DNA of 59,879 nucleotides, counting the filler, from Bipalium vagum (lineage: Eukaryota): assembly GCA_037834085.1 (NCBI GenBank). It is 3 parts of 3 records of this genome, joined end to end, with 100 filler letters (N's around TTAATTAATTAA, not from the genome) between each part and the next. Parts side by side here need not be neighbours in the genome. Positions count along the whole stretch, not along the records: positions 20,191 to 42,770 come from JBBMKC010219465.1; 2 more parts are not named here. One strand, written 5' to 3'. The position numbers were made by a program, and so were the translations under genes. This document shows, piece by piece, positions 21,314-42,770 of this stretch (position 1 is its first letter; every line of letters begins with the position of its first letter). The notes beneath the pieces were generated by a model. The model was not told the DNA's origin. It did no database searches and saw nothing but the letters and a program-made list of their open reading frames with translations.

Positions 21314-21412
21314 ATGCTTCTAGTATATTTTTGGTTGATAATAGTATCAATGAAGTTCATTATTAAATTAACAGAAACAATTTGCTCCATAAAGCAGCAA
21401 TTTCATGAGATT
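21314..21412 (+). CDS. Candidate first (signal-peptide) exon of the DSL-Ig receptor gene
   Basis: ATG, then hydrophobic MLLVYFWLIIVSMKFIIKLTET..., then a phase-0 gtaact donor compatible with the phase-0 acceptor at 25129. Inference only. Confidence 0.25.
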
Positions 21413-21894
21413 GTAACTGAAAACATTTACAGAATTAATAAAATAGCATATGAGGCCTAGAATAATAACTGTTGGGAAAGTCACAATAATATCTATGGAA
21501 AAGATTCGGTACATCACTCAGATGCGGAAACAGCGATTCATACAAACACCATAAAATGTTTGTGAAATTGGCTCAAATTACAACTAAGGCTTAGAAATAA
21601 TACAAAAAATGAGTCGATAAAGAAAATTTAATTGAATTTATTTTGAGGAGTCAATAAAAATACATATGAGAATCATTTAAGAGCGTTTTTAGTTTAATGT
21701 TAAAATTAAAAATATTGAAATTAGTTAAATTTCTTAATTAATTTAATTAAAATAGATAAACAAATGATATAACCTTCAAAATGGGGATATTTTTCACCAA
21801 ATTTCAACCTTGTCAATGATAATGACACGATAATTAAGTTTTTAATTACACTGTACATTAGTGATGATGATTTTTATGAATTCACAGTAAATAT

Positions 21895-22930
21895 GATGTT
21901 GGATGACCTAAAATGCTTCCACCGTTTTTTAAAATAAAAACAAACAAGTTTTTTCACATAAAAAATATACTTTATTAAATCAAATATGTTCCTTTTTGTT
22001 CTATAACATTTCTCCATTTATATAATAAAACCATAATTCCATCATTGTAAAATTTCTGAGATTTCTGATTGAAAAACATACAATATGCTTTTCTCGATCT
22101 TTTGAAGCAAATGTAACTCCATTAAGAAAGTTCTGTAGATAGCGAAAGAAATGGTATTTCGATGGTACCAGATTCAGGGTCGTAACTTCTCAATCAGATT
22201 ATCCAAATTTTTTATGTCATAAGAGGTGTATATGCTCGTGCTTTGTCCTGGTGGAACACATTGCCTTTTCTGTTGACTAATACTGGTCGCTTCTTTTGAA
22301 TCGATCGATTTAAAGTTGTTAATTGCACACAGTAGAATGCGGAATCAATTTTTTGGTCAGGTTCTAGGAGCTCAAAAATGCACGTTTTCTTTCCAATCTC
22401 ATCATATGGACATCATTAACTTTTTTGGAGTTAACCTTAGATTTTGTGGATTTTCACCGCTTTTTAATAGTAGTTTTTCTTCATGTTTTTGTCATATCTT
22501 ATCCATTTTTCATTATCTGTTAAGAAGTGATTCCATTTCATGATGTTTCAATAAATTTTAACAGACGGAAATGTAGTCACTTAAGTTTTGTCCCTATAAG
22601 TTATGAGGCACCAAATATCGAGCTTCTTTTTGTATCAGAGCTTTTCTAAATATTTTAATATAGTTTTTTGACAAATTCTAAGAGATTCTGTAATTTCATA
22701 ACTGCTTAAATGCTGATCTTTTTGAATTATTTTTCTGTATTTCGACGTTCTTATCTGCTATTCCATATCAAGGTACATCTGTCACATCGAGGTTGCCACT
22801 TCAAAACCGATCAAACTATTCACGGGCTACTCTCTGATACAATTTTAGCTTCATACAGAACACATATATTTTTGGCGGCTTGCGTTACATTTTTCCATTC
22901 AGGAAATAAATTTTAAGAATACCTAATTTC
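21895..22930 (-). mobile_element. Decayed mariner element
   Basis: Minus-strand FHQDKARA, DPESGTI/KYHFFRYLQNFLNG and PKKLMMSI-like mariner motifs with many stops. Confidence 0.65.
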
Positions 22931-23099
22931 TTACTTGTTTTGAATTTTTTGAGACAATTATTTAGTTTATTAAAATAATTGATATTAAGGATTTTTTTTC
23001 GAATAATTAAAATTAAGTAATTGATTCTATATTAATATTAATTAATTAATAATATTAATATTAATTAATAATATTGAATTTTGATATTACAGATTGCTT

Positions 23100-23620
23100 G
23101 TGATTTAACTTAACAGGACAGTGTACTCTTCCCACAGGACAAAATCTGTTCAGGACTAGTGTTGCGCTCGTGCACTCATTTCTCTAGAATTAAATCTAGA
23201 TAGAATTCTGTATTCAGTTTTGCTTCTTTAGGTATGAAAATGGTCAGTTTTCCCATCAATGCAAAGTTCTAACCAAACCATGACTGATTCACCCCATTAT
23301 AGTTTTCCTATAAATCCTTCTTTATTGCATGTGTCCTTGATAGAAACTGCAGAGGCATTTTGAGATACGGAGAGCGATTTTCCGGCACTTCATCATATAT
23401 TTTTTTCGGAGCAGTGGGTTTCGAATCACTTTGCCTGTTTGTTTATTTCTAATTCAGCATGTGCTTTCTTTTCGCGTTTTTGTTTTTTACATCGATTTAC
23501 TATTCTTGACACTGATGGTTCTATCATTTTGAGGCTTTTTGCAATGATCGATGTGGTCTTTCAATTTCAAACATTTTCTAAAATTAAGTTTCACGTTATC
23601 TTACTACCCCTACTGTCTAA
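23100..23620 (-). mobile_element. Tc1/Tc3-like transposase remnant
   Basis: Minus-strand GESVMVW..IDGK and a PEQILSCG (DLNPIE-like) region; heavily decayed. Confidence 0.45.
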
Positions 23621-23779
23621 AATATTAAATTTTTATAAAATTAGCAATAAAATTTGAATCAATACAAAATTAAATTCTTGGAAATAAATATGACTATTTT
23701 AAGAAAAAAAGCGTAGTATATATTGGATAACATGAAAATTCTAGTTACGCATAATCTACTGTTGTATATTATAAAATTT

Positions 23780-24900
23780 ATTTATGGTGTGTTTTAAATT
23801 TACCTGTTTTGGTTAACTGATTGAAATTGTCAATTTTCTCAGAAATTGCGTGGCAAAGCTACATAAATGTCTTCATCATTCGCTAAGAAATATAAAGATT
23901 TTATTACTACTTGTGGGAATAAAGCCCCATCATATACCACAGTCGCTTCATGGACTAAGCGGTTTCGAAAGGGCAGCAGGACATTAAATTCAACTTGCAT
24001 CCGTGTCGTCTTTTAGCCGTGGTAACGTCTGAAGATGTCAGGCCATATTCATAAACTATCATTTAAAATCCTTTTATTACCATCAATGATATTGAAGACA
24101 TAATTGACACTGGAATTGCAAGCATCCATAAAATACTGCAGTCAGTTACGACTTAGGAAGTTTTTTTCTGGCCCGTACGGTATTTGCTAACAGAGTCGCG
24201 AAAAGAGGAACTAATTTAATTTATCGATTATTGCTTAGTGGTTTCCGAAAATGAACAAAACTTCAATTATTCAAAGAGCCACAGGTGATGAAACTTAGGT
24301 ATATTATTTTGAACCCAAAAGAAATCAGCAAATAAGGTCTGAATTGCTGAAGGAAATCATCTCAGGTGGAAAATCAGGATAAAACACAGTTTAATGTTCT
24401 ATATGCAATATTTTTAAAATTTGATGGTACAAATTAAAACTTCTGGGAAAACAGTTACTGGCAATTATTATTGCAATACTGTTCTAACCTATGTGAAAGA
24501 TATGCATGCCGAAAAGTATCCAAAGGATCCGTTTCACCCTCATTATGATTAACCGCTGACTCATTATTTACAAATTATAGTGGATTTCTTGGAACACCAG
24601 GAAATATTTTTGATCTTTTACCTTCCTTGCAGTACTAATCTAGCTCCATGTGATTTTTCGTTACTTAGTAGACTTATAAATCACCTTCCAGGTATAGATA
24701 TGAAGGTTGAAGTCAGTTTTTAACAGTTATATACCAGTATTTAAAACGTGTACCTAAAGAAGATATTGTTTATTACTAAGAAAAATGGAATGATGTTTAA
24801 TAATTATAAATTCTGCTGGGGACTACTTTGAAAAAATGTAACAACTGTTTTAACTGTACTATGAATTTACATTTATTTTATTATTATTAAATTTTAGCAA
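23780..24900 (+). mobile_element. Decayed mariner element
   Basis: TGDET*VYYFEP (~24280), PCSTNLAPCDF (~24625) and GDYFEK (~24820). Confidence 0.8.
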
Positions 24901-25128
24901 GTGTGTGACAAAACTATAGCTTCCAATAATTTTCACTTCTAAATTTTTAGAATAAAAATTTTGATAAAGTGAAGGATGTTTAGAAAATTTTAATTATTCC
25001 GTTGAAAATAGAAAATTATTTTACATATTCATTTTCATATAATAATAATTTTGAATACTTATGAAGATTTATTTCTATTATTTTTTTGTTATCTTTTGAA
25101 AAATTTTTTAATTCACTTACGGTTTTAG

Positions 25129-25429
25129 GAAATAGTAGCTTTCATATATTCATACAAAAATTTTTGTTATAATGCGAAATTAGATCGATCTTGCTTATAT
25201 CTTGCGGAATACTTTTCATTTCCAATAATGTCAATTTTTGAAAAGAATCCATTTTATTTTACTATTTCAACAATTTATAATAATGAAAATAATTATACGA
25301 TATTACATTCATTAAGTTTCAGAGTTAAATTAATTTGTGATAATAAATATTTTGGTATATTGTGCTATCATCATTGTGAAAATGATATTCGTAGAAATTG
25401 TACATCTTTGGGTGAACAATGTAAAATAG
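25129..25429 (+). CDS. DSL-Ig receptor-like gene: exon with DSL-like domain
   Basis: ttttag acceptor; open frame EIVAFIYSY...LSFRVKLICDNKYFGILCYHHCENDIRRNCTSLGEQCKI(G); gtgtga donor. The C-x8-C-x3-C spacing with YFG is DSL-like. Confidence 0.7.
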
Positions 25430-25788
25430 GTGTGAATAAATTAAAAATTCCTTTTCTAAGTCTTTGGAAATTTAAAGTTTATGTTACATTTTTAAGAATT
25501 TGATTATATAAAAATAACTATTTATGTTATTATTTAGATTGTAGAATTATTGTTTATAAATTTAATTATCTAGATTTAGAAATATTTTAAAAATTATATT
25601 AATATAAATTTTATATTTTAAGCTACCATTTTTAATTCAAAATTAATTATTAATATACACTTAAAGAAAATGGTAGTTATTTTTTTTAAAAATTTAGTAT
25701 ATAGTATATTTTTTAATTATAAATTAATTTTTAAACGTATATTTAATTATAAAAATAATGAAACTAACTTTCTAATATCGCTATTCAG

Positions 25789-25941
25789 GATGGATTGGAA
25801 TAGTTAATAATATTGAATATCCAAGTAAATTAAATTTTATGAAAAAATATTTTTCACAATCATTTTCGTGCGTTATAAAATCGTCTTGTTCCAGAATATG
25901 TTTATTCTGTGTGTTACGGGGCAACAATACATTAAAATGTG
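25789..25941 (+). CDS. DSL-Ig receptor-like gene: GWIG + Cys-rich linker exon (phase 1-1)
   Basis: ctaac branch point and ttcag acceptor; GWIGIVNNIEY...CVIKSSCSRICLFCVLRGNNTLKC; gtaagc donor. Completes the DSL C-x2-GWxG motif. Confidence 0.65.
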
Positions 25942-26677
25942 GTAAGCTTATGACAACATTATTAAAAATAAAGTTTCCAAATTACTACAGTTTAAAAATA
26001 TTAATATTATTTTAAAAAATATTAAGTTTAATTATCTTATGGTTTTTAATTTCTAAAAACGTTTTACAGTAAATGAAAGTACATTAATGATAAGAATTTT
26101 GTAAAAAATTAAAATGAAAATAATAAAATGGCTTCTGATATTTGGTTATTTTATTATTCCTTTGTTTTGTACTAGTATGTGATTTTTTCATGTTTAGTAG
26201 TTTTAGTTTCTGAAAAATCAGATGTTATGCATTTGTTATTGTTTGGTTTTTCAGTCATCAGTGTTTTCTCATATATTAAAAGACTTTAAAAATAGCTAAA
26301 GCTTCATATAAAAATGATATGTTCAGATAAATACAAATATTTTATCAAAAATTAATATGTATCCATCATACTTAAGAGAAGTATTACAATTTACTAATAA
26401 AAATGTATTTAATTTTTTTATAATGTATAATAATTATACTTCAAATATTAAAATTATAATTCATCTCAAATCAAAACTAAAGAAAAAGTATGCAAAAAAA
26501 TGTTCAATTTGATTTTTTTAATTAAATTCTTTTGTAATCGTAAAAAAACAAATATCTTTTTAATCTTTTGGGTTTTGGAAAATTTTTAAATATTGTCTTT
26601 TAAATACAATAAATATTATCTGCTATCACTAATCGTGACTTATTAAAATATGTCTTAAAATAAATAATTTTTTTAAG

Positions 26678-26944
26678 GAATGAAAAATGATACTATTAAT
26701 ATACTCAATGTTTCAATAACAGAAATTGTTCCAGGTATACCAATTTCCTGTGAACTGAACTTAGCAATATCTTCTAAAGTTTATTGGGAAGTTGCGGTTT
26801 ATTCATTTTTATATATCGAATATAAAGAAAATATTATTAAGATTAATTACACAAATGTAAATGTCACAGAAATTGAAATGTTTTGCGTGGCTGAAATCAT
26901 GTTACAAGTTGTTATAAGGAGAAATTTTACTTTAAGACTATGCG
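26678..26944 (+). CDS. DSL-Ig receptor-like gene: Ig-like domain 1 (phase 1-1 exon)
   Basis: ttttaag acceptor, gtatgt donor; PISCELN...VYW...IEMFCVAEI...RRNFTLRL, with C...W...C and 44 residues between the Cys. Confidence 0.7.
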
Positions 26945-27433
26945 GTATGTTTTTTATAGGTTTGATTTTCATAGTAAAATTTAATTTATTAATTGAATAA
27001 TAATGCTTTATCATTTCACATTTTAAAAACATTATTTCTAGTCTTTTTAAAGAAATATAAATCTTTTTCAATTTTTTTACTTATAAAGAGTAATAAAATT
27101 CAAATGTAATTTTGATTGAACCAGCTCCCTTTCATAAGATTAAATGAATTACATGTTAATATTTTAGTAATTATAGAGCTTATTAATAGCTTATTATAAT
27201 AATTATTCGGTACTGGTTACTATATGAATTAAATTCCAACTCAAAGCTACTAATAGAAGTTATAATTTTTCTTACTTCATAGCACACTTAGTTCTATTCA
27301 TACAGTAAATTCTTATAATATTAACACCATAAAATACTCATATAGATCAATGATGCTAATTTATATTTAATAAAGATATTCCTTAAGAATATTAAAATAA
27401 GAATATTCATTATTTTGTACTTCAGTTTTACTC

Positions 27434-28180
27434 TTAACACTAGGTTACGTAAAATTATGTAAAATTTCGAAATAAACAAAATTGTTACCCAAATTCATAT
27501 ATTGTTCACGTCATTTATTATGTAAAAATAAATATTAATCATAATATATATTATTATGTAGAAAAGTAAATCAACAATAAAACTTTATTTTTGTAAGTAT
27601 TCCACACATTTTCTCCAAATGTTCATTGCACACATGGTTTTCACAAGTGTAAAAAATTTGTTTATATGCTTGAGCTTTTGATGATGGAAAGTTTCTGTAT
27701 TTCTATTTTTAACAATTTATTTAAGACTCATTTTAGAAATATTTTTAATAATTTAATTCTGGCACACGGTTATTAGAAAAATATTTATCTGTACAATAAG
27801 AGATTTAGTCAAGTTATATATATACTTTTGACTCAATATATTCAATTACAAGAATATATATATTCAATTACCAAGACTCTGTATACCAAATAATAGGTCA
27901 CTACTATTACTGTCATAGATCCACCAAATCTTAATTCAATATTTATCTCATATTGCCTCTAAATGGTATCAATTGCTTATAAATTGGAGTGTTTTTTTCC
28001 AATTTTTTGTTAAATAGGTCATGTTGATCTCTATTTTTAGATAAAATTTGACATGACGTCTTCGTATTGATTTTGATAATTGGTCGTCAAAGCGTAAATG
28101 TTGAAATATTGCTGCAATTTTATTTTTAGACACAGACGCGCAATACACAGCACATCCAGATAATGGATCATAGAAATTAT
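27434..28180 (-). mobile_element. piggyBac transposon remnant
   Basis: ttaa-cactagg terminus at ~27434. Minus-strand Cys-rich tail CENHVCNEHLEKMC and ASVSKNKIAAIFQHLRFDD (piggyBac MSRNRF...LRFDD). Confidence 0.7.
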
Positions 28181-29410
28181 TGTTAAGTTTTTAAAAGCGG
28201 GGTTTACTTTTAGTTGTTTTAAACCTTGGATATCCTTTCAAAAACTTAACGTAGCTCGTATTAATATCAGAAGGATTTTAAAGAGTGTAACGTTCGGTTT
28301 ATGTAAAAGGCTGAGTTTATAGATATTTGTATTTTAAATCGACTGGGTAGCTGTAATGTACTTGCGATTAATAATTATGAATCAAAACGTAAATATGATT
28401 ATACTCAATATAAAAATATAAAAGTGGTATTCACAAAGTCAAACCAGAACGATTGAATAATATTAATTTAAAAATTGTATTATTTATCGACTCAAAAACT
28501 TTTACACAACCTTGTTGAACAAATTTACAAATTTTAAAAACTATTATTAATGATAAGTCTCGGAAATGTCAGTTTATACTCTTTGCAAACTTAGCTTAAA
28601 GAGTCCTCGAAATTCAAAAAGCGCTCAGTTACCTTTTCAGTTGATCTATCAGTTGTTTGGTCAAACGTTCTTTCAGTTGCTTTTCAATCGTTTGTTCTGT
28701 TTTTTCGATTGTTCGATTGTTCGTCCAGTACCTTATATATGGCTAAAAATTTGTTTTACCGTATCCGATTTCTGTTTTGCTTGTCAACAGTTCTGATATT
28801 TGATCTTCGTGATATAAGAATATTGGTTGAAGATTTGATTGCTACTGACTGGCTAGGATCTAATTTCTATTTTGACTTTAACAGTATTTGACGTTGGATT
28901 TGTCGTCTAGGTACTCGTATAGTATTTTTTATGTCCTTTTTAACTATAAGCGACTTTATTTATAATAAAAAATTTCTCTTCTAATTATTTTTAGTAATCT
29001 GCAATTACTAATTTTAATTTTTTATATATTATTTTTTCATTATTTATTCGGTTATAGATTATTATTTTTATTTTTAGGAATTATTTTTACTGGACTTTTT
29101 AAATTTAGAATTATTCTAATTTATGTACCATTTTTACAAATATTATATTTTATTTATTTATTTTATATTTTTATAATTTTCGGGATTTATCAATAATAAT
29201 TTACATATATTTAATAATATTTCACACATATTTTACACCCATGCAAAAAATAAAAAGTTCTTTACAATATTTCCAAATGTTTTGTTCCGTGCACAAAAAA
29301 GGTTTAATGAATAACAAAAAATGTTTTTTAAAGGTTAATACAAAAATTTTTCTTAAAGGCTTAATTCTGTCTCATCTCGTGGAAGTCCTGGGAGTTTGCC
29401 TGGGAGTCCC
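28181..29410 (-). repeat. Dispersed non-coding repeat, copy 2 (begins tgttaag on +), interrupting piggyBac
   Basis: Reverse-complement similarity to 12590-14180. Confidence 0.65.
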
Positions 29411-30154
29411 CTCATCATTAAAAATCATCATTTCTATTAAAAACGTATCTGATGTAAGATTTCAGTTTCAAAATTTTCTTAATTTTAATTATTTTTTAAA
29501 GTTATTATATATATTTTTAAGTAGTATAGGCATTTGATTATAATGATCTCTATTACAATTCGATCGTTAGAGTGCGATTTATGTAGATATTCCTAAAAAC
29601 CAGATTGTTAAAAGTAATTAATTACACCGGGCTCTGGGTTTTTTACCCACGGGGATTTCCAGAAAATCAAATTAAAAAAATTACTAAGATTTATTTTACA
29701 ACAAATCCATGATTTTTCTGTTTGGGTTGAATTGAATTATCTTCATTTTCACAACTAATATTTTTTCTAATTTTGTTTAGCTATTGAAATAATTCGATAT
29801 CTATATTTTAAGGAGTATGTTAGAAGATTTCTCTATATGTTTAAGACTTTGCACAACTTGGTGTTTAGGTATTTTAACAATGAACTCTTCCTTATCTTCT
29901 TTGATATGTAAATCATCGGCAACTTAATCTTTGAGTCATATTTTCAGTAACTGTGACTTTTTCCTTTATGAATGACGAGTCAATGTCGACAGAGTTCACT
30001 AAAGGAGGAGATTGTATCAAAAATTTCTTGTAATTCTTAGATATCTTTGGTTGCTTGAATTGAGTTTATATTGAAAATTTTTGGAATTCATTCAAATAAC
30101 TAAAAATTCAAATAAAACGAGTATCCACTGTAATAATAATTTCTTACTTATATA

Positions 30155-31050
30155 TACGTGGTGTGGATGAAAAGTCCTTAGAATCGTGCACAAATAGAAT
30201 AACTAATGAAACGAAACTTTGTATTTAGGACAAGTAAATTACAAATATAAATAAAGTTAATCACTTTTCTATATAACCATCTTCGTCCATCGATTTATAA
30301 CAGAAGATTTTGAATTTTCGAAGAAAATAGTAGGCTTGTCATTCAAAAAATATTGAACTGTTCGTATGAGATCATCTTTAGACCCAATTCTCGCTTTTTC
30401 AGATCACTAAGCAGTACATAGTAGTAGTGAGAATTTCCTTGGATAAAATCAATTTTTATTACACATTTTGCACCCCAGAATACACTGAGAGTCAGAAATT
30501 TCCGGTGAGATATCAATGGACGAAGCAAAGTTTGGTGCATTTTCCTCAAGAAATACCCATTCACAAGACTCACGCCTACTGTATGGAATGCAAAGACTCA
30601 ATGGAATCTTATCCTCTGTTACAATATTCTTCAAAAAACTCTGTCCAAGAGAATGAAATAGACCTAGGTTTTCTTGACATGATTTCATTCGCTTTTATCG
30701 CATCTTCATTGTCAAAAATCGTGGGACAAATTTGTTACATAATTTCCTAACTCCGATACTCTATTATGTTCTGCACAGTCTTCGCTTAAATTAAGTTTAT
30801 TTGAAACCTCTCTGGGTAATACGCCTCTCTTTGACGATTATCTTCAATTTTTATAATTTTTGTTTCCCAATTTCTGTAGGTCGTCCAATTTTTTTCTTTG
30901 TCTAACACATTGTTCCTGTCATAAGGAAAATTCTGTGATCCAATTGTATACAGTCGCCTTGCATAGTGTTTCATTTGCATATGCTTCCTCCAGTTGAGAA
31001 ATAGTTTTCTTCTTTTCTGTCTTCTTCAAAACCGTTTGACGCCACCTAAT
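30155..31050 (-). mobile_element. Decayed mariner element
   Basis: tacgtggtgtggatgaaaagtcc terminus. Minus-strand TISQLEEAYANETLCKATVYNW, NIVTEDK and LSVFWG..IDF motifs. Confidence 0.75.
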
Positions 31051-31101
31051 GTCATCAAAAGCGTACAACTTAAAACAAATATAATAACACATATATACTC
31101 T

Positions 31102-32561
31102 CAGTAGCTCTCAAAAATTAGTTGACACTGAAAATATAAGTGTTTTATGAAGTTTCTTTTTTATTATGACTACCCAAACCAATATATAAATATGTTTTCG
31201 TAAAGGCTATTCAAGTCAATCAAACGAAAATTGTATTGAAATGGATATTAAATAAATGAAATATTCAAGAAAATATGCAACATTAAGAGTTCATAAATTT
31301 GACAATGTAACATGAAAATCTAGAAACCTTTTTAATATATTACACGAATTTTTAAAATTTATTATTAATACAAGTGATCCAAACTAATATTTATTAGCAT
31401 AACCATTGGAAGCGATAACAGCTGCACATCTGCGAGGTATAGAGTCAACAAGTTTAATCAATTTTTCTAAAGGAATTTTAATCCAACTTTCATGTAAATT
31501 TCTAAAGAAATCTTTTTTATTGGATATATTTTAACTCGGATGGTACGATCAAGCTCCTTCCATAAATGCTCAATCGGATTAAGGTCCGGACTCTGACTAG
31601 GCCACTTCATAACACGTATTTTTTTGCGTTCTATTGTTTGTTTAATAACGTTGGATGTGTGTTTGGGGTCGTTATCTTATTTAAATATCCAGCCTTCTTT
31701 CATGGTTTCATGTGCAAATGGAATCATTGTATCCTTAATTATGTTATCATATATTTGCATGTTCATGATGCCTTTTATTTGAATAAGAGTTCGACTCCAT
31801 CTCTGGAAAAACAACCCCACACCATGACATTTCCTCCACCGTTTTTAATAGTCGGAACAAGTCTCTTACATTAAATCTTTGGTTAACAGATCGACGAACA
31901 TATAGAATACCATCACTAAATAGCAAATTAGATTTGCTTTCGTCACTCCAGAGCACTTTAGACCAATCTTAGACACTGATTTTATTTGATGCGTTGGAAT
32001 TACTTTGATTAATTTCTGTGACAATATTGACAACAGTTTTTCGTGGATCATCTTTTGAGGAACGAATAATGATGCGATCTTGATGAGCAGTTGTTTTCCT
32101 TGGCCTTCCAGATATTGGTGCATTAAAAATATCTCCATTTCTGTTAAATTTCTTGACCCAATTGCTGATTACCTGTCGCTTAAGCCAAAAATCGAGCGAA
32201 ACACTTGCTTGTGTTCTTCCTCTTTTAACTGCCATAACAACTCGTTCCTTAATATAATTAACCATAATTTTTTGCTCTCACCATGATTGAAACTAAATAG
32301 TTTTAGACATTATTTTAAGAAAATAGTTTATAATCTTACTATAAATTGATTATAAATAAAATGACAAATAATTTTTGAGCGCTTTAATGGTTTATGCTTT
32401 TTTATTATTTAAAATTTATAAATATAAAATATTTTTAGAGTTTATTTCTTCGCATATGTAGGAAGATTTTTAACAAAAAATTAACATAATTATCTAGTAA
32501 CAGCTAAATTTACTTATGAAAACTTAAAATTCGCGTGTCAACTAACTTTTGAGCGCTACTA
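31102..32561 (-). mobile_element. Near full-length Tc1 (DD34E) element, frameshifted
   Basis: TIRs cagtagctctcaaaaattagttgacac / gtgtcaactaacttttgagcgctact. Motifs SGRPRKTT, LWSDESK, GGNVMVWGCFS and [15 protein letters not shown]. Confidence 0.9.
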
Positions 32562-32637
32562 TATATTTATTTTTGAAATTTCATAAGATTCTTAATTATA
32601 TTTATATAATTGTCTGTACTTTTAATCCACACACATA

Positions 32638-32990
32638 TATTAGGTGTGGGTTTCTTAAGAAATCAAAATATTTATTTTTTCACCATTTTCGGAAACTTAT
32701 GAATACCTTCGAAAAAAGTTTTCTTGGACGAAATCAATTCCTCCGGTAATTTTTTGATCTCTTCATAATTATGGTTCCCTCTTAGTTACACCAGTCACAC
32801 AAAGTTGCTGATTGTTCCCTTATAAACCTAAGATCTTTTGTGTCGACGATTTTCAGTTCAATAATGTATTTTTGTTAATTTAAAAAGTTAAAATATCAAA
32901 GTTTTAAAAATTAAATTCATCAAACAATCTGATGTTTGATATAAATATAAAACGAAGGAATCCACAGAATTAAATGATATACCTAATTTG
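32638..32990 (-). mobile_element. Short internally deleted mariner
   Basis: tattaggtgt ... atacctaat termini. Its end shares atcaa.ca.tctgatgtttgatataaatataaaa.gaaggaat with 41100-41170. Confidence 0.55.
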
Positions 32991-33313
32991 TTAAAAAATT
33001 TAACGTACCAATTTCGTTGAAATCAACTACAAATATTTTTACTAGACATTTAAATCAAAAACTGTGAAATATATTCTGGTAAGGGATATAAGATTATATA
33101 TATATATATCTTACTTTCTCCTTATTGAATTGATTTAATAGTTCAAAAGTGCGGTATGTCTTTAGGTTTTTTTCCAAGCTGAGGGTCATTACATATATTT
33201 CAGACGTAAATAAGAAGTATCATCATTTAATATAATAATAACTGTTTATCAATAGAAAATTTAATTTACATAGTGTAAAAATATTTTTGTGTTGATGTTT
33301 AATTAATTTGTAG

Positions 33314-33577
33314 ATATGCCAAATGATATAAAACTATATCCTGTCAAAGAATGGTACTTACCTTGTGACGAAATAAAATGTATTACTGATGATAATAAAT
33401 CCTACAAAACAATGATTAGGGTACTTAATAATAACGATTATTTCTATTACTCTGATAGTGGATCACTCATAATTGGTGAAATGGTTGTGAAAAATGTTTA
33501 CGATATTGAATGTAAAGTTGAGCAACAATGCAAAGTGGCACAATCAGTAAAGCGTACATTCAAAATTAAAATCTTAA
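33314..33577 (+). CDS. DSL-Ig receptor-like gene: Ig-like domain 2 (phase 1-1 exon)
   Basis: tttgtag acceptor, gtaata donor; DIKLYP...EIKCIT...SLIIG...YDIECKV...VKRTFKIKIL. Confidence 0.68.
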
Positions 33578-35214
33578 GTAATATTAGATCGTATATATTT
33601 TCAGATTGATATTGAAAATTCCTTTTTAAACGAGAAATTAACTAAGAAATTTACGAAACTTAAATAAATTTTATAAAATTTTGTTATATTATTTTATTAA
33701 ACTTCTTAATATTACAATTGAATATTACACTCAAAAATTGGAATTAACTTTATAATATATTAATATTTGAAAAAACTTAAACTACGTTTAAATTAATTTT
33801 TTAATCAAAGTACTTGTTATATTTTTAAAAATTTTGTCCACGTTTATCACCTTTTTAAAAAACCCACGAAAACCTTAAAAATTTATTTTCAATTTTCAAA
33901 TCTAATCTATTTTTCAGTGGATTTTACAAATCTTATTATTTAGAAATTTGTTTTTTTTTTGAATTTTAAAATATGTTAATATTTTATATTAACCAATTTC
34001 ATTCCAGAAGTTTGATTTACTTAGTGTATAATAGTTCATATAGGACCTATTAAGACTATATGTTTCATAAAAAAATTTTAAAAATTAAAATGAAATTTAG
34101 TACAGTAATTTATGTACAGTAAAAGTCTATCAATGCGCAATTAAAATATGTCTCTGTAGTGATTTAAATCAATTAATAAATCTTCAAATAAAATGTAAAT
34201 TTCACTCTAAAGGGACATCCCCAAATGTGGCTTATGGAATGAAATTGGTTAATCAAGTATCGTTAATTATCTGATTCCAAAATCTAATAATTATGTTTCA
34301 TAACTATTACCTTCCCTGCACTAAAATCAAATAAAACAAATTCTAAAACTTGATGAATTGAACACAGCTTTAATGTCTCGATAAGGTCTTAAAATCACCC
34401 CACGAAATATCAAAATGTTATAGTTCACAACTTCCTCGACTCTTGTTAATCAAAATAGTTTGGAGAAACCCCGGAAGAACGTAAATAATTAAAATATTAA
34501 TATCTTTTATTGGCTTCTGTATTAGAAAACAATAAATAACTAATTTAAATACTCACTGATAATTCAAATTAAAAGAAATTTTGAAATTTAAGTAAATTCC
34601 GTTTGAAATATTAAAGAATAATTCGTGGTTATCAAATTTATTTTCGAAAACAGTGAAAAACATTTAAAACTAATAATACGAATATAGATCTTTGAAAGAA
34701 GTCAATTTCTACAACTCGGAATGAAAAAAACTAGATAATTGAAGCCAGATTGAGAAAAGAATTTTGTTAGTATTAAAATAAAACTAAAAATTGTTTTTAT
34801 GATTCGATTATTTAATTACATTAGTTTTTATTAATTATTTTACATTCAGTCTGGCAAATTATATCTCTGGCATATTTGGGCGTAATTATATGTAGTTAAG
34901 CCCTTTCATGACAAAGTTCAATGTGGCAGTAATTCTGACGCTATAAATTATTGTATTATTATTATTTGAAATATTACCCTTATCATGGTGTATTTTAAAA
35001 CTCAACAAATATCAAATTATTTAGTTAATCACATTTTATCTACTGGTAGTTTTGAATTTTCTTTTTTCAAAGTAGCTGGTTTATTTTTTTTTTAAAATAT
35101 TTTTAGTCAATTTAGAATTTTATTAAATGTCAAACATATATTCCGCAGTATTAATCGATTTTTCTTAATTTTTGATATTTACTTGTCATGCCTTACACTA
35201 ATTATGAATATTAG

Positions 35215-35493
35215 GTGCTTATGAAACTTTGAATTTTTTACCAAATACGAACAATATTTTGGTTGGGAGAACTATTAAATGTTATTCAACGAGTACTTGT
35301 AAACGTTTACCACTTATGGTTTATCAAAACAAAGGATTAACCAATGTTGGAAGATCAAAGCGATATATTTACGGAATTAACCAAATTGTTATCAGAACTG
35401 ATGAGTTTTTTTTAAACGGAATTTATGAATTAACTTGTCGTATTCTGAATAGCAATTGTTCTACAAATGTTAGAAGATTCTTTCAAATTTGGA
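35215..35493 (+). CDS. DSL-Ig receptor-like gene: Ig-like domain 3 (phase 1-1 exon)
   Basis: ctaat branch point and attag acceptor, gttagt donor; LNFLP...VGRTIKCYS...NGIYELTCRIL...VRRFFQIW. Confidence 0.7.
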
Positions 35494-36576
35494 GTTAGTA
35501 TTTTTTATAGTTTTCTATGTACTGTTTATTTAATGCAAAATATTAGTGGTGTTATGAAATAAAATTTTGACTTACATCTGTTTTCTCTTACAATCATTTA
35601 AGCAATTATTTGATTAAATGGATTTGCATTTATATTAACAATATTTCAAGAATATTAAAATAACTTATTGTAAATGTGGAAAGAATTTTTTCTATTAACA
35701 TGAAAATTTCTCAAATCATGTTGAATATTAAAATATTATTTGTACTTCACACCTTCATAATATCATTTATAATTATACAGAATCCATTTTATATCGGTTG
35801 AACTTTTGCTATTTTATTATATCATTTACTAAGTAACAAGGTCATTATTTTTAAATAAAGATTAAATTATATTTTCACAAATACTTAAAATATGTTTTTA
35901 TAGCAATATAAATGCATGTAATCCAAAATTAATTGCAATTTTCTAGGTAAATTCGAATATGAGATGAAATGTTTGATGCCCTATTGCGTACCTAATTTTT
36001 TTTTATCCCTAACTATCAATAATAGTTCTATGGTCATAATTTTCAAGATTGAAAAAACGTAACGAATGTTTAATAACTCTGTTCCATCATAGTAATCAAT
36101 ACGTGATTAGTGTAGAAACCCTTCATTTATCACAGGTCTACATTAGTGTGACTTATCTTTTAGACTAAAATCTCCTTTTTGAAACTTTACACCAATTTGA
36201 TGATGTGCTCTAGGACACACTTACTTCAATATCACAAATAATCCTTATGGTAGCAATAGTAAATTCTCTTTTATTAATAATAACAGATCAAACCTCGAAT
36301 TGGAATATTCATTTTAAAATTATAAATTAAAATAAATGGGTTGATTTATCTATTTAAACAAAATTTAAAAATATACTTTGATAGTAAAATATCAATGATG
36401 TAAGATTTTAAAGAGTTGTTATTAAAAATATTTATTTTGATACAAGAAAATTAAATTATCAAAATCAGGAAAAACTTTTGGTACAACATAATATTATAAA
36501 GAAAATAACATCAAGTGGATTAAATTTTAAGAAAACATTCAAATTTTATTTAATGATAAAAATTAAATTGTTTTAG

Positions 36577-36852
36577 ATAAGCCGATTCGAGATCTACATA
36601 TTTTTCCATCTTCAGTTACCATTGGTAATCATATCTTTTGTAATTTTGGATTTTTAAAAAATAAATATACTTCCATAATCTTAATAATAAGAACTTTGGA
36701 CTTTAAGTATATAAAGACTTATTCAAATCCAAGTGTAAGAATCAGGTCAAAATACTTTTACAAAAAGCAAATTAATATCAATTGCACGATATACTTTATA
36801 TTCGATGGAAAATCTAATGTCTATAGTACGCAAAAGAAACTTTATGTTGGAG
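36577..36852 (+). CDS. DSL-Ig receptor-like gene: Ig-like domain 4 (phase 1-1 exon)
   Basis: ttttag acceptor, gtaagt donor; LHIFPSSVTIGNHIFCNF...ININCTIY...TQKKLYVG. Confidence 0.7.
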
Positions 36853-37559
36853 GTAAGTTGTTTAAAATTATTTTAAATGATTATTGTTTTTAATTATTGT
36901 ATCATTCTAATAGTTTTTTTTAAAATTTTAATAATTTTACTTAATGTTTATAAATATTTATGGTTATAAATCCAGTTATTCATAATCGCCTTGGAAATAG
37001 ACTGGTCATCAATTCGTAAAGCAGCACTTAGACTCGATGACGATTAATTATTTGTTTTAAGCTCCAGCCTTTTCCATAAAAGCTACATTAACAACGATTT
37101 GCTCTAGAAAAAAGGAGAACTTCTGGGAATAAGAAATTCCTTGTTACGCCTCTGATCTGTTTTTCTTTTAGGACAAACAACTCAGTTCATTAAACCAGTT
37201 TAATTGTTTTTCACATTGATGGTCAAAAATACTGATTTTTTAAATAATGGAATATTTTATTACTTCCAAAGTGACACAATTCCGAATGGATCTCCTTCAC
37301 AAATTCTTCTACGATACTTTCTGGAATAATTATTATGAGGAGGCTAATCAGACCTGAGGAATTTTTAATTATTTATTTTAATAATTTTAAAATACTTAAA
37401 AAGTATGAATGAAATTTTAAAGATAACTTATTTTTAAAATTTAATAAGAAAAGAAATTTTCAGGTCTGAGAAAATTTGTTTAAATATTATTTGTTTTATG
37501 ACTTAAAAAATCTATTCAAAAAATAATTTTTAATTCTGAGTATAAACCGATTGATATTA

Positions 37560-38165
37560 ATATGGCTGCCATCACCGACTCGGATCCGATCACTAAACAT
37601 CTCCAACCAAAAACGTTCAGTAAGGTTGACGATGTTGAAAAATTCATCGCGTAGTGCATAAGGTTTTTCACGGTGAAAGAGACACCAGTGAAAAGAAGGG
37701 AAACCTTGATCTATTATCTATTTTTCTTAGATTTAGTAGAGAAGAATGAAAGCACGGCCGGAAAAGTTAGGAAGGTTACGATTGGCCTTTTCCAAACCAA
37801 AAGATATGATGGGTAATTTGGAAAAGTTAATCAACTATTGTAGAGAACCCGATAGTGTGGAAAATTTCTCGAAAACGTCCATAAGATGGTGGAAGATGTC
37901 TTGTCACATGAAATGACAAAGGAAAGACTTTTGAAAAAAGTTCTAATTAGATGTATAAATGATCCAGAAATCTCGAAGGAGATCGAGCTGATAAAGTTAG
38001 GAAATATTGAAGAAATGGAAGATCTAATTAAATTAATGGGTGAAATCCGACAGAAACAGTCTGATCAGGTCAAAAGCATCAGGACCTACATAGACATAGC
38101 GAGGAACGGTAGATATCAAAACAGACGGGAAGCAGGATATAAGATTCGACCTGTTGTAGAGCAAA
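37560..38165 (+). mobile_element. Gypsy-like gag remnant
   Basis: MAAITDSDPITKHLQPKTFSKVDDVEKFIA*CIRFF (gag-like P..F...DDVE.F), followed by the helical ORF 37886-38215; stops and frameshifts. Confidence 0.45.
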
Positions 38166-38166
38166 G

Positions 38167-38400
38167 TTATTTAAATGACTTTGGTCTACAGTTGCTTGTC
38201 AAAACATCCATTTGACTACCAAATTCTTGTGTCCTTTCAATGATTTTAGAAGTCGCTTTTTCTTCCGAAATGCGTTTTTCCACACATGTTGAAATTGTTG
38301 TTTTTTTGAATCTTAAAAACCATTTTTGTGCTGTTCTTCTGCTAATTGCTGATTTCCCAAAAAATAATTCTACATTCAAATGAAGATTATATATGTCTCA
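38167..38400 (-). mobile_element. Mariner N-terminal HTH fragment
   Basis: FGKSAISRRTAQKWFLRFKK. Confidence 0.65.
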
Positions 38401-38689
38401 GTTTTAAAAATATTAGATTTTTAGATTCTTTAAGACTGTGTTCAAATATGTCTATTAAAATTATGAGAGAAATGTTATTGAAATCTAATAAATATAAAAT
38501 TTTAATGAATTAAAACCTAAGAAATCCTTATAATTAAACTTAAACTCAAGTTATTCATAAAATACCCAGATTTCATTTAATAAAATAAATATAGATTCAT
38601 TTCAATTTCATTATCTTAGATAATTTTTGCTACTAATGATCTTAGAATTTTCCAAATTTTATATTTTTAATAATTGCTTCTATTGATAA

Positions 38690-40320
38690 ATCAAATGCTG
38701 ACACTAGTAAAATATGATCAATGTACCAATATATACTGGTTTTCTCAATTCACATTTGTATCAAAATTCAATTCAATTTCTAACGAACCCAAAAGAACAT
38801 CTCAAATATTTCAATAATTTTTGTGATTTACCTTCTTTTAAAAGCCTTAAAATATTACTTTGAATATTATTTTTAAATCAAACTTCCAGGATTATTTTGA
38901 ACATAATTCTTTTGTCGTTCTAATTTTTTTCTATGATTTTCATAGTATATTGGATTTCTTATTATATTATTTATTAAATTTATTTTCACATTCTTTATAA
39001 ACTTTCATAAAAGTATTATTTTCATCTAAAAATTTTTGTTGGTTTATCTATATCACATTTTGTACAAATTTTGTTATCTAATAATGGAATAATTGTCATG
39101 TCTTGCAACTGTCCTTGTAGATATTTCATTTTCATTACGACAAGTGTTCACAATTCTTTTCTCTGATCACGATTAAGTCCTCGAAATTTAGTCAATAATA
39201 AAATTATAAAAATATGTACTAATCTATATTTACATTTTACAAACTGGGGGCTAATAGAAATTTACTGCAAAAGTTGTTTCCTTAATTTTCCATACAGTCT
39301 TTAGCATTTCAAAATTTATTAAACACATGGTTACAGTACTATTTTTATCTACACTTTCCTCCAACGAAACTGCTCTACTCATCATTTTTTTCTCCGGATA
39401 ATCATTGATAAAAATTCACTTGTTAATCTTCCCAGTTGCCTTTGTTCTCTTCATTTGCAATACTTAATTTTTCTGTTTCATGCTACTAAATCTCGAATCA
39501 TATTTTACTTTCCATTGCTTAATGCCATTTTTTTAACCATCTTAGGTAACACAACATATGTCCATACTGTTAGCGCTAAAAATGTTAATTTCTCCTCAAT
39601 ATTATTAACCACCCAAAAAATTCTTCTTTAAACTTCTTCTTTTATTGCAAAATCTACAAATTATTACTTTACATACTTTGCATAATGTCCTGTTTCATTA
39701 CAGTTTTTGCAAACCACATGTTTACTTGGATCTTAATCTCGTCCTCGACTGTATTGGTGCTCGACTTTGTCTCGCTATGTCCATCTTTTCATAATATAAT
39801 TTTTTTACCCAGCTGCTCATTATTTTTCCTTCGTTCATTTCTTGTCTTCCTTGATTTATACTAACAGACGTTCAAATTTTTTTAATTTTTATATCATTTT
39901 ATTATTTGTATTTTAAATATCAAATAAATTCAGATTTATTTTTTCAGATAAAAAATATTTTAATAATATTTTCTAATAAACACTTTGAATTGTAACAGTT
40001 ATATCTTCCTTGTCTAACATTTCATATACAACTATTAATAATTACTAAAATGCAAGTAACGTGTATTATTGTAACCTGTAGAGGTAACGTAAACTGAAGG
40101 GTTACTTTTATGGTTGATTGTTGTTTGATTTCCTTGGCCCATATAAACAGCAGTCTCGTACACAGCAATCATATTGGAAATTTCATATTTTGAAAAATTG
40201 ATAGCATCATCAAACTTTTTAAATACAATTGTACGTTTAATCACTTCAAGATCCAAGTTTAAATAGCTTTGTCGACCTTTGCAAAATTAACTCATAACAT
40301 AAAAATATCTAACTAATGCT
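38690..40320 (-). mobile_element. Decayed retroelement gag/protease-like region
   Basis: Minus-strand VVCKNCNETGHYAK zinc-knuckle-like motif at ~39670-39720; otherwise heavily decayed. Confidence 0.35.
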
Positions 40321-40329
40321 AATGATGAT

Positions 40330-41170
40330 TTAAAATCATTCCTGTATAAATGAAATTGTGAGGCGACTTGTAGCTCATAGATTTGAATATCAATTCTTCT
40401 AAAAATCAAAGAATATTGGTCTTTTCTCAGCAACTGAATCAAAAATCATATCTTAGAGTTCGGAAAACAATGACTTTCGCAATTTTCATTTTCCCTATTA
40501 CTCTCATTTGTTTGTTGAAAAATATCAAAGTATTTCTCTTCCAATTTTTGAACCATACACAGGTAATAGTTTCGTTTCGCAGAAAATCGTTAACTTTGAA
40601 GTATCTGTGGATTCTTCCACTCTGCTATTATTATAATCTGGAGAATAGTTTTTCCTTTTTTAGCCACTTCGTATATATTCTAAATCAAAGAATCATTCCA
40701 AATTAACTAAATGACAAAACACAAAATTAATAGGTGTATTATAAATAGGAAATGTCTTATAACAGGGGAAACACTGTAGATGATTGCAAATGGCATATTA
40801 AAAAAATTTAACTGCTTCTTTAGTTGTTTTTGTTTTTGGGTATTATCAACTGCTAAGATGACTTCCAATTCTGAATTGTCAAAAATTTTCTGTTTACCAT
40901 ATGCATTCAAAATAAAACAATAATCTTCAGCCAAAGTTTTCTTTAAGTTAAATAATAAAAGCATTAAATGCCGCTAATGTTCTTTAGTTTTTTCATATAT
41001 TGCCATATTCGATTGCTAAATTTATCAAATTATCAGTTTAATAATTTCTTTTTGTTAATTTAAAAGCTTAAATATCAGTTTAAAAATAAAAAAAATAATT
41101 CCATCAAGCAGTCTGATGTTTGATATAAATATAAAATGAAGGAATGGGAAGAATTAACTGCTAAATCCTA
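40330..41170 (-). mobile_element. Decayed mariner (Mos1-like) remnant
   Basis: LLLFNLKKT.AE...NAYG and FDNSELEVIL..DNTQKQKQL. Confidence 0.65.
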
Positions 41171-41458
41171 TATATCATAAATTTCATTGTACATTATGTA
41201 TTTTTAAAACAATTTTTATCATTTTTGTTATTTTAAAAGCAAAATATTTGAGCGTATTTCTGTTGAAACTTCCATAACTAAAATAAATGAGTTACTGTTA
41301 AATGCGATAATTGTTTACAAATATTTCAAATGATCCACATGTACGTGTTCTTAGTGCTAAAATATTGGAGTATTCAGACTTAGAACGAATTAAAAAGAGT
41401 TGCAATTTAATTATAATTTTGATTTCTAAATTTCATCTATAATTTAAATATATTTTAG

Positions 41459-41751
41459 GTTCACTCCGTAACTATCATTTTCTTAAATTTCCAATGCTTA
41501 GCGGAATCTTATTAGTGTACTTCTTACTGTCAACTCTTGCAATACAATATCTGTTGATTCTTTCGATTATAATTCTCTCGAAAATAAAAATTCCAAAGTT
41601 ATCTAATTTTAAACAGTTAAGTTTTCAATATCAGATAAGAAGCATAAGAAATCTGATGAATAGATTATTTCGAATTGCTCATGAAGAAATTTCTAACGCA
41701 AGAAATCCTGTTTATAGAAAATTAGTATCATATCAGTCTGTACCTGAATGA
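41459..41751 (+). CDS. DSL-Ig receptor-like gene: terminal exon (transmembrane helix + cytoplasmic tail)
   Basis: ttttag phase-1 acceptor. Hydrophobic MLSGILLVYFLLSTLAIQYLLILSIIILS, basic stop-transfer KIKIPK, tail ending ...RNPVYRKLVSYQSVPE*. Confidence 0.68.
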
Positions 41752-42131: not shown

Positions 42132-42570
42132 TCAAACAAAAAAATTTAGTCTAACTCGCCCTTCGGACAAGAAGAAGGTCATCTCTTCAGCCATTACATT
42201 CTTCTCTGCTTGATGCCATCTGAACATTTTAGTTCCACTTGATGAGAAGACAAGTAACGCAAAAGTTTTGTAGGGCCTTTCATATTGAAAATCATTCTTC
42301 TTCCTCTTGTGTGGTTCTATCCTGACAAACACTGAATCTCCAATCGAGAAAATTCGTTTGCGTTTTTTTCTTTCGAATTGACCTATTTTTTCGGCAGCTG
42401 TATCCAAATTTACTTTTGCTTCCTTTCTAATATCCGTCTCAACCCCGATAACTTCATCCAATACAGAATGAATATTCACTTTGTGACCGTAGACAATTTC
42501 AAACGGTGAGAATTTTGTTGAGCTTTGCTGGGTAGCATTAATGCTAAATTCGATCCTCGGTAGCAGGTGA
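42132..42570 (-). mobile_element. Gypsy-like integrase C-terminal remnant
   Basis: Minus-strand NATQQSSTKFSPFEIVYG, then FSIGDSVFVR...YERPYK (GPY/F-like). Confidence 0.7.
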
Positions 42571-42770
42571 TGATTTTTGTGTTTTTAATTTAATTTAATT
42601 TTTATTTTTTATGTAAGGATTTGTGGAAGATAAAAACCTTTTAATTAATTAAAATTAGTAATTATTAATTATTATTATTATCATTATTATTAGTAGTAGT
42701 AATACAGAAAGATAAGTAGATATTTTAGGAATTTAACAGAAAATTAAAATAAGAAACATGATATTTCTAA

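Follow-up and report, generated by a model that had tools for sequence, protein, structure and literature searches.

A candidate DSL-like type I surface protein with four probable Ig-like modules in Bipalium vagum

Introduction

Canonical Delta/Jagged ligands carry a signal peptide, an MNNL and a DSL domain, at least 9 or 16 EGF repeats, a transmembrane (TM) segment and an ICD (Gazave, 2017), and all DSL domains identified by that time were stated to sit between the signal peptide and the EGF repeats (Komatsu et al., 2008; PMC2504490). A broad 'DSL-like' class, made up of proteins with a DSL domain and at least one extra conserved domain, has also been accepted (Gazave et al., 2017; PMC5356439). 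DOS motifs are absent from the DSL proteins of nematodes, which may also be without a TM segment, and contactins are listed among Notch ligands that have no DSL domain (PMC2504490). We found no description of a combination of DSL and Ig domains in the literature searched. Here we analyze a locus of Bipalium vagum (assembly GCA_037834085.1) that, on our best but unproven reading, encodes a type I surface protein of the 'DSL-like' kind that is specific to its lineage.

Results and discussion

The window, the whole stretch of DNA that was analyzed, comprises 59,879 nucleotides (three parts of three records of the genome, filler included), and the locus lies in the part taken from JBBMKC010219465.1 (positions 20,191–42,770 of the window). 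Seven plus-strand segments, each bounded by AG and GT (with TGA in place of GT for the last) and totalling 1833 nt, were found to join into a single stop-free frame of 610 codons with TGA at its end, which bears out the consistent-phase frame of about 610 residues proposed in the sequence-only reading; the remaining two frames of the joined segments contain 48 and 72 stops. Exons 2–7 share phase 1 at their starts. Their acceptors, in each case the first AG 0–5 codons into the stop-free segment, are all six forced by close upstream stops and fall in one phase, with two bases completing the split codon each time, and the best-consensus donors (GTAAGC, GTATGT, GTAATA, GTTAGT and GTAAGT) each leave one base over. 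In the predicted coding sequence, 58% of first codon positions are purines and 79% of third positions are A or T; the host genome is very AT-rich, and the GC content of the exons is 27% compared with 26% in the surroundings. Stop-free runs of at least 88 codons numbered 20 in this piece, as against 2.2 expected and a maximum of 7 in Markov-1 simulations, an excess that is due to the gene itself together with transposon remnants. Decayed Tc1 and mariner fragments occupy the introns and flanks, in line with the transposon-filled introns that had been proposed. We infer that the seven exons belong to a single transcript.

Exon 1 (25129–25429), which is internal and consists of 100 codons plus one base, encodes a beta-rich part with two Cys followed by a DSL-like framework. 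A soil-metagenome relative (P0001, on contig L001) aligns with it without gaps at 55% identity and keeps all seven of its Cys, with a dN/dS of around 0.19. Nucleotide identity between exon 1 and L001 drops to the background level of around 35% exactly at the acceptor AG and the donor GT that both have in common. By this comparison, exon 1 is truly coding and under purifying selection, and its splice sites are conserved in a second organism.

The DSL-like framework (25336–25429) has the spacing C-x8-C-x3-C-x7-C-x6-C-x2, with a YFG, and is completed by GWIG at 25789–25799; the exon 1/2 junction runs through the Gly codon of GWIG, and the motif arises only on the predicted joining of both exons. 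The combination C-x3-Y[YF]G-x2-C-x3-C ... G-x2-C-x2-GWxG is what we take to be the DSL signature, and we estimate that around 1e-7 chance occurrences of it would be expected in this piece. P0001 retains all five framework Cys as well as the second aromatic residue and the Gly of Y[YF]G; in it YYG takes the place of YFG and makes the C-x3-YYG-x2-C stretch more canonical. The sixth DSL Cys, which belongs to the third disulfide and is expected 2–3 residues past GWxG, is absent, the next Cys following 22 residues after GWIG, and the loop between Cys3 and Cys4 has 7 residues, of which just an RR pair is common to P0001. In canonical ligands this loop has about 11 residues and includes an RPRDD-x-FGH-type Notch-contact sequence; the conserved contact residues are reportedly those of Cordle et al. 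2008. No sequence of the RPRDD-x-FGH type was found in the loop of the Bipalium protein. The DSL signature claimed in the sequence-only reading is thus exact in its Cys spacing up to GWIG, but it lacks the sixth Cys, has a short loop and is without a Pfam or PDB match.

The HMMER comparison with the DSL, MNNL and Ig families did not support the earlier assignment, giving no Pfam match at E<=10, exon by exon. For DSL, separate searches with exon 1, its DSL part, exon 2, P0001 and L001 were all negative at this threshold, as were those for MNNL, EGF and Ig with any exon taken singly or with the relative. Exon-by-exon sequence searches of the PDB matched no Notch ligand or Ig protein, and phmmer against 1.84 billion representatives retrieved no Delta/Jagged protein at E<=0.001. 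In terms of language-model features (ESM-Atlas), the nearest clusters to exon 1 were exclusively DSL, with a score of 0.85 based on 160 shared features and a low 'recognition', which is within reach of chance or distant matches and below the tool's reliable level. All of the best ten Atlas neighbours with an assigned family were DSL, and none was EGF. Together with the framework, these neighbours suggest that the head encoded by exon 1 may be DSL by descent.

Exon 2 (25789–25941, phase 1-1) encodes GWIG and then a stretch of five Cys spaced x5, x3, x2 and x9, with no C-x-C, which fits neither the position of the sixth DSL Cys nor canonical EGF spacing. It had no Pfam match (E<=10) and no PDB match. 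The claim that EGF repeats do not follow the DSL-like part therefore held, there being no match to an EGF family and no EGF spacing in exon 2.

The next four exons are of Ig-domain size (264–279 nt each), start and end in phase 1 and show strand-like patterning. An Ig domain is a module of about 90 residues with Cys in strands B and F around 40–60 residues apart and an invariant Trp in strand C, and the encoding of one such domain by one phase 1-1 exon is typical of the superfamily, not defining. Exon 3 (26678–26944) has the pair Cys24–Cys69, five N-x-S/T sites and a Trp at residue 36, 12 residues past the first Cys. Exons 4 (33314–33577) and 5 (35215–35493) contain four Cys each, including pairs at 22/66 and 22/74, respectively, and exon 6 (36577–36852) has the pair Cys21–Cys69, so that the paired positions lie 44–52 residues apart throughout. 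Exons 4–6 have no strand-C Trp at about this distance from the first Cys, so three of the four modules lack it. Exons 4 and 5 resemble each other (z=4, with none of 500 shuffles scoring as high), and are the only two of the Ig-sized exons with detectable mutual similarity. None of exons 3–6 matched a Pfam family at E<=10, PDB searches with phmmer and hmmsearch retrieved no Ig protein, and homologue searches with exons 3 and 5 detected none.

Structure prediction gave, for exon 4, a single-sequence AF2 model that is all-beta with five strands but reaches a pLDDT of only 50; a second AF2 model had a pLDDT of 42, and both are too poor for use. It is for this reason that Foldseek and VIA-align returned nothing above noise with these low-pLDDT models. 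The Atlas features of exon 5 gave a weak match, with a top cluster without a family (0.81) followed in rank by bacterial Ig-like and Y_Y_Y sandwich families (0.77–0.79). N-glycosylation sites are clustered in the predicted ectodomain. The likeliest fold of the four modules is that of Ig-like beta sandwiches, and their membership of the Ig superfamily (IgSF) is putative, since no Ig family was detected by profile. Of the four one-exon Ig domains proposed earlier, size, phase, Cys pairs and patterning have thus been upheld, but not a profile match, and the Trp is present in one of the four.

Exon 7 (41459–41751) encodes the sole segment with a Kyte–Doolittle mean above 2 over 19 residues (2.45), a TM segment at around 41497–41580. 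A basic stop-transfer sequence, KIKIPK, follows, and then a 56-residue tail with the motifs NPVY (41704–41715), YRKL (41713–41724) and VSYQSV (41725–41742) ahead of the TGA (41749–41751). This unique hydrophobic segment and the three motifs confirm the TM segment and tyrosine-motif tail of the sequence-only reading. No homologue of exon 7 was found.

That the locus is a real multi-exon gene encoding a type I single-pass surface glycoprotein, with a diverged C2/DSL head on four probable Ig-like modules, has in our judgement about an even chance of being right. A real seven-exon gene could also have a head that is not DSL by descent but a Cys-rich module specific to the lineage, or else a generic EGF-like derivative, with the same spacing by coincidence; in that case the protein would be an orphan glycoprotein of the cell surface with no relation to Notch ligands. 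The absence of Pfam and PDB profile support, the missing sixth Cys, a Cys3–Cys4 loop of 7 instead of about 11 residues, an Atlas match under the tool's reliable level and the lack of any Delta/Jagged protein among the 1.84 billion representatives (phmmer, E<=0.001) all speak for such a head. We nevertheless regard it as unlikely in view of the estimated rarity by chance of the signature combination, the beta-rich stretch that precedes the framework, as in C2/MNNL, and the ten best family-bearing Atlas neighbours, all of which are DSL and not EGF.

The gap of 6369 bp that separates exon 3 from exon 4, with its Tc1 and mariner debris, would also suit a division into two genes. Exons 1–3 and the missing 5' exon would then encode a small ligand, secreted or lipid-anchored, with a DSL domain alone, similar to the soluble DSL proteins of C. 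elegans, and exons 4–7 a separate Ig-like membrane protein. Soluble DSL proteins do occur in nematodes (PMC2504490), and reading through the exon 3 donor yields 18 further codons, mostly hydrophobic, before a stop, which could serve as an alternative end; such a hydrophobic read-through is, however, expected by chance at this AT-richness. As exon 3 ends in a good phase-1 donor (GTATGT), exon 4 starts at the sole nearby AG of matching phase and lacks a signal peptide of its own, and the gap showed no candidate for a hydrophobic N-terminal exon, we consider two genes distinctly improbable. Most improbable of all would be a locus in which only exon 1, perhaps with exon 2, is functional and the downstream segments are unexpressed or decaying remnants chained by post hoc choice of splice sites. 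A relative is detectable for exon 1 only (none for exons 3, 5 and 7), exon GC does not differ from that of the surroundings, and AG and GT are frequent enough for chains to be built easily. Yet six same-strand, non-transposon stop-free runs of 79–124 codons are present where around two of at least 88 codons are expected over six frames, the forced acceptors all fall in one phase (around 0.4% by chance), the Cys pairs occupy matching positions from one exon to the next, and the only TM segment is encoded by the final exon, just ahead of the stop.

Taking the single gene with a diverged DSL head as our preferred reading, the membrane-distal end of the protein would derive, with strong divergence, from the C2/DSL head of the Delta/Serrate/LAG-2 ligands. 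Where those ligands have EGF repeats, a short linker rich in Cys and four modules, each about 90 residues long, would keep this head off the membrane. Since the short cytoplasmic tail has NPxY and YxxPhi sorting motifs, clathrin adaptors (PTB-domain proteins and AP-2) would probably internalise the protein once a partner on another cell is engaged. The shortened Cys3–Cys4 loop without an RPRDD-x-FGH-type sequence makes classical Notch activation less likely than a role in adhesion or recognition or a modulatory one; that the protein might be an immune receptor or a Notch modulator, as the sequence-only reading suggested, is pure conjecture.

Like Delta, Serrate (Jagged) and LAG-2, the predicted protein has a type I topology, an N-terminal beta-rich region followed by C-x8-C-x3-C...C...C-x2-GWxG with Y[YF]G, a short tail with sorting signals and, as in many ligand genes (PMC2504490), an intron at the end of the DSL part. 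Unlike them, it has no EGF repeats, DOS motif or sixth DSL Cys, its loop is 4 residues shorter and without the conserved Notch-contact residues, there is no Pfam DSL or MNNL match, and its stalk consists of four Ig-sized modules. It would share a DSL head in a non-canonical architecture with 'DSL-like' proteins and with the ten DSL proteins of C. elegans, which are divergent and in part secreted. The chain of Ig-sized modules, one per phase 1-1 exon, with a TM segment and tyrosine-based motifs after it, recalls the IgSF non-canonical Notch ligands F3/contactin and NB-3 and IgSF adhesion receptors with NPxY/YxxPhi tails. Contactins, in contrast, have no DSL domain, are GPI-anchored and contain FN3 domains, and profile searches with the exons of the present protein detected no Ig family.

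The fuller proposition, an undescribed architecture among relatives of Notch ligands (C2/DSL head, four-Ig stalk and NPxY endocytic tail) in an AT-rich lineage also present in forest soil, falls somewhat short of even prospects. If it is true, exon shuffling can place a DSL head on an IgSF scaffold, an exchange between two major metazoan surface-protein families, and the protein may act as a Notch ligand, or as a cis-inhibitor, with pulling or endocytosis that is independent of the usual ubiquitin route. A truly DSL head on a truly Ig stalk would break the published rule that places DSL between signal peptide and EGF repeats, and the protein would serve as a natural experiment on the contributions of the EGF stalk and the DOS motif to the function of Notch ligands. 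Should the head be a convergent Cys-rich module, the locus would add one more orphan surface glycoprotein from a fast-evolving AT-rich genome.

Exon 1 begins at a conserved acceptor, and one or more upstream exons are therefore absent from the model, which is 5'-incomplete and has the N-terminus, with any signal peptide, outside the modelled exons. A single candidate first exon (21314–21412, plus strand) passed a simple filter applied to positions 20191–25128: it combines an ATG and a hydrophobic start resembling a signal peptide with a GT donor that falls on a codon boundary, compatible with the phase-0 start of exon 1.

The seven-exon reading frame

Seven plus-strand segments (25129-25429, 25789-25941, 26678-26944, 33314-33577, 35215-35493, 36577-36852 and 41459-41751), each with AG before it and GT after it and the last closing with TGA, join into 1833 nt that read without interruption as 610 codons and a stop. 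Read in the two alternative frames, the joined segments contain 48 and 72 stops, which confirms the chain of seven GT-AG exons, about 610 residues long, put forward in the sequence-only reading. The translation of exon 1 reproduces the cysteine-rich end quoted there, and the GWIG motif exists solely in the joined reading, in which exon 1 gives its final base to the Gly codon split by the junction. The acceptors of exons 2-7 are each preceded, at a distance of 0-5 codons, by an in-frame stop; every open segment uses its earliest AG, and the six acceptors agree in phase. The strongest donors by consensus (GTAAGC, GTATGT, GTAATA, GTTAGT and GTAAGT) leave one base over in all cases. With the acceptors forced into one phase and the donors supplying the matching leftover base, arbitrary selection of splice sites does not by itself account for the chain. 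Of the sequencing runs, one DNA run (X1, probably the source sample) contains the locus and no RNA run does.

The piece carrying the gene (20191-42770) is around 25% GC throughout and contains 20 open stretches that reach 88 codons or more without a stop, compared with a mean of 2.2 and a maximum of 7 in Markov-1 simulations; the long open runs outside the gene are mostly transposon debris. Exons (27% GC) do not differ in composition from the rest (26%), and the introns, equally poor in GC, extend over kilobases. In the joined frame, purines make up 58% of first codon positions and A+T 79% of third positions, a weak coding signature. A local tblastn search of the piece with the exons as queries gave no further paralogous copies within the introns. 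Beyond the exon 3 donor the frame stays open (26945-27000, plus strand) for 18 codons, mostly hydrophobic, before a stop; this could conceivably yield a short isoform ending in a hydrophobic stretch, or be plain AT-rich intron.

Conservation of exon 1 in environmental metagenomes

A phmmer search of 1.84 billion representative proteins retrieved one true relative of exon 1 (P0001, E = 3.8e-28), a 130-residue open reading frame found on two short metagenome contigs, from JGI sample 3300031718, presumably a forest-soil metagenome, and from ENA ERZ27256860. The JGI contig (L001) is 939 bp long with 26% GC, and the exon 1 counterpart occupies positions 391-691. All 100 codons of exon 1 aligned with P0001 without gaps, at 55% identity and with seven of seven cysteines invariant. 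Nucleotide identity was 50-77% per 30-nt bin inside the exon and 23-43% in the bins immediately outside, and both sequences share the exon edges at the same positions (5' AG|GAAAT, 3' G|GT). The Nei-Gojobori dN/dS was about 0.19, with dS saturated. Taken together, the alignment, the drop in identity at the shared AG and GT and the dN/dS ratio indicate that exon 1 truly codes for protein, is internal to its gene and evolves under purifying selection. The contig carries an orthologous or paralogous exon 1 with identical splice sites, which shows that an organism related to the source occurs in the environmental sample. A Dictyostelium-like origin of the gene, suggested by the 25% GC and the relative from soil, was rejected: the introns are too long, at kilobases and with GC as low as in the exons, and dictyostelids have no DSL. 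Exon 2 was not seen in the 245 bp of L001 remaining downstream of exon 1.

Apart from P0001, the same search returned only P0002, an acidic four-fold repeat protein of 427 residues that matched 20 residues of exon 1 (residues 4-23, NFC..AKLD; E = 9.6e-4 summed over four repeats), probably by chance similarity. A metagenome scan with alignment A2 gave no matches, and a degenerate DNA pattern for Y[FY]G..CYHHC gave 11 (L002-L012), all of them unrelated chance hits.

The conserved acceptor of exon 1 implies that one or more exons upstream of it are missing from the model. Within the preceding 5 kb, an open segment at 21314-21412 (plus strand), with an ATG start and a GT donor at a codon boundary, is the sole signal-peptide-like candidate and a possible first exon.

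Relationship of the head to DSL domains

Joined as predicted, exons 1 and 2 form the framework C-x8-C-x3-C-x7-C-x6-C-x2-GWxG, in which the motif between the first two cysteines is YFG here and YYG in P0001; we take C-x8-C-x3-C...C...C-x2-GWxG with Y[YF]G to be the DSL signature. By a rough composition-based estimate, the part in exon 1 would by itself turn up by chance about 1e-7 times in this piece. In the protein-language-model search, exon 1 had no neighbours other than DSL clusters (score 0.85, 160 of 256 features), and the ten that bear a family name are all DSL; by the search tool's own calibration, this score with a low 'recognition' value is a lead only. The DSL domain proposed from the sequence alone thus finds agreement in the cysteine and GWxG spacing and in these neighbours, but not in profiles or structures. 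Exon 1, its DSL part, exon 2, P0001 and L001, each searched separately, gave no DSL or MNNL match in Pfam at E<=10, and a DUF4796_N match at E 0.04-0.08, from the exon-by-exon searches and the relative, is meaningless. Sequence searches of the PDB with the head, as a single sequence and as a two-row profile, gave no match, and the AF2 model of exon 1 from the two-row alignment reached a pLDDT of 42, with no meaningful Foldseek match in the PDB. The sixth DSL cysteine, after GWxG, is also absent, the next cysteine lying 22 residues later. On balance, we consider it probable that the head is DSL by descent.

The loop between Cys3 and Cys4 spans seven residues and is without those of the face that, as Cordle and colleagues reportedly described in 2008, forms the conserved Notch-binding surface of Jagged and Delta. 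Classical Notch binding by the head appears considerably less likely than its DSL descent.

Immunoglobulin-sized modules and C-terminal tail

Exons 3-6 encode 88-92 residues each in phase 1-1, and each opens with an x-I-x-[ILF]-x-P...G..I.C pattern. Their cysteine pairs lie 44-52 residues apart (Cys24/69, 22/66, 22/74 and 21/69), with a hydrophobic-alternating stretch ahead of the second cysteine, like the Ig E-F region. Exon 3 has a tryptophan 12 residues past the first cysteine and five N-glycosylation sites; the strand-C tryptophan is absent from exons 4-6. Exons 4 and 5 resemble each other above shuffles (z = 4.0, 0/500), exons 4 and 6 marginally (z = 1.75), and the remaining pairs are at background.

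Searched exon by exon, exons 3-6 had no Ig-clan match in Pfam at E<=10, and no Ig protein was among the PDB matches of the single exons and profiles; those to FimA, PsaE, a nuclease and a spike protein (single exons, profiles A1 and A2) were due to chance only. Atlas features of exon 5 matched weakly, the top cluster being unnamed (0.81) and followed by bacterial Ig-like and Y_Y_Y sandwich families (0.77-0.79). Exon 4 alone was modelled by AF2 as five strands at pLDDT 50, and fold searches with it (Foldseek against the PDB, VIA-align wide) returned noise only. No homologues of exons 3 and 5 were found in a word-indexed protein collection. The claim of four Ig-like domains therefore holds for exon size, phase and cysteine pairing but not for profile or structure matches. 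Size, phase, cysteine pairs and strand pattern make the Ig reading reasonable, and we lean moderately towards exons 3-6 being Ig domains.

The predicted membrane-spanning segment and tyrosine-motif tail are borne out in exon 7, which holds the only strongly hydrophobic stretch in the model (around 28 residues, Kyte-Doolittle mean 2.45), followed by KIKIPK and a 56-residue tail. The tail carries NPVY, which overlaps with the YxxPhi motif YRKL; its VSYQSV matches the ITIM-like consensus [SIVL]xYxx[IVL]. A homologous-protein search with exon 7 found nothing, and AATAAA is absent from the 550 bp after the stop.

Possible role and alternative explanations

NPxY acts with PTB-domain adaptors and YxxPhi with AP-2. 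The product is most likely a type I surface glycoprotein, in which a diverged C2/DSL-type head would be carried by a stalk comprising four sandwich modules and, given the established roles of NPxY and YxxPhi, the tail motifs would drive internalization. Unlike Delta and Jagged, the protein is without the EGF1-2/DOS region and has an altered Cys3-Cys4 contact loop, and these differences argue for a non-canonical role, which may be adhesion, recognition or modulation.

The DSL-Ig interpretation of the gene is partly supported by these data and has to be weighed against others. The head might be an orphan cysteine-rich module outside the DSL family, a reading that fits the empty profile searches and the missing cysteine; the spacing of the framework and the exclusively DSL neighbours point the other way. 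The model might also combine two genes that are separated by the 6.4-kb intron 3 with its transposase remnant, yet the common acceptor phase runs across that intron. Alternatively, exon 1, perhaps with exon 2, might be the only functional part: the metagenomic conservation concerns exon 1, whereas the forced acceptors in one phase and the recurring cysteine pairs extend beyond it.

Up to 2008, all identified DSL domains were placed after a signal peptide and ahead of EGF repeats; in many ligand genes an intron directly follows the DSL domain, and the ten DSL proteins of C. elegans, some of which are soluble, lack DOS motifs (Komatsu et al., 2008; PMC2504490). DSL proteins are structurally very diverse, and a 'DSL-like' class has been set aside for those with extra domains (Gazave et al., 2017; PMC5356439). 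By these published definitions, the protein described here is neither Delta nor Jagged, and at best a new variant inside the loose 'DSL-like' class. Full-text literature searches combining DSL with immunoglobulin or architecture found no DSL-Ig protein, which is not proof of absence.

Transposon remnants around the gene

Intron 3 contains a decayed Tc1-type transposase on the minus strand (31470-32277), broken into several frames, with HTH_28/HTH_32 at its N-terminal and DDE_3 at its C-terminal end (E = 1e-11). Also on the minus strand are a mariner remnant upstream of exon 1 (22004-22412, Transposase_1 at 22215-22412), a Mos1-like remnant in intron 6 (38170-38397, HTH_48) and fragments at 30346-31110 that are mariner-like by eye, with no Pfam match. 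Just downstream of the gene, a 150-codon open segment (42135-42584, minus strand) with no Pfam match at E<=0.01 resembles, by eye, the C-terminal region of a retroelement integrase.
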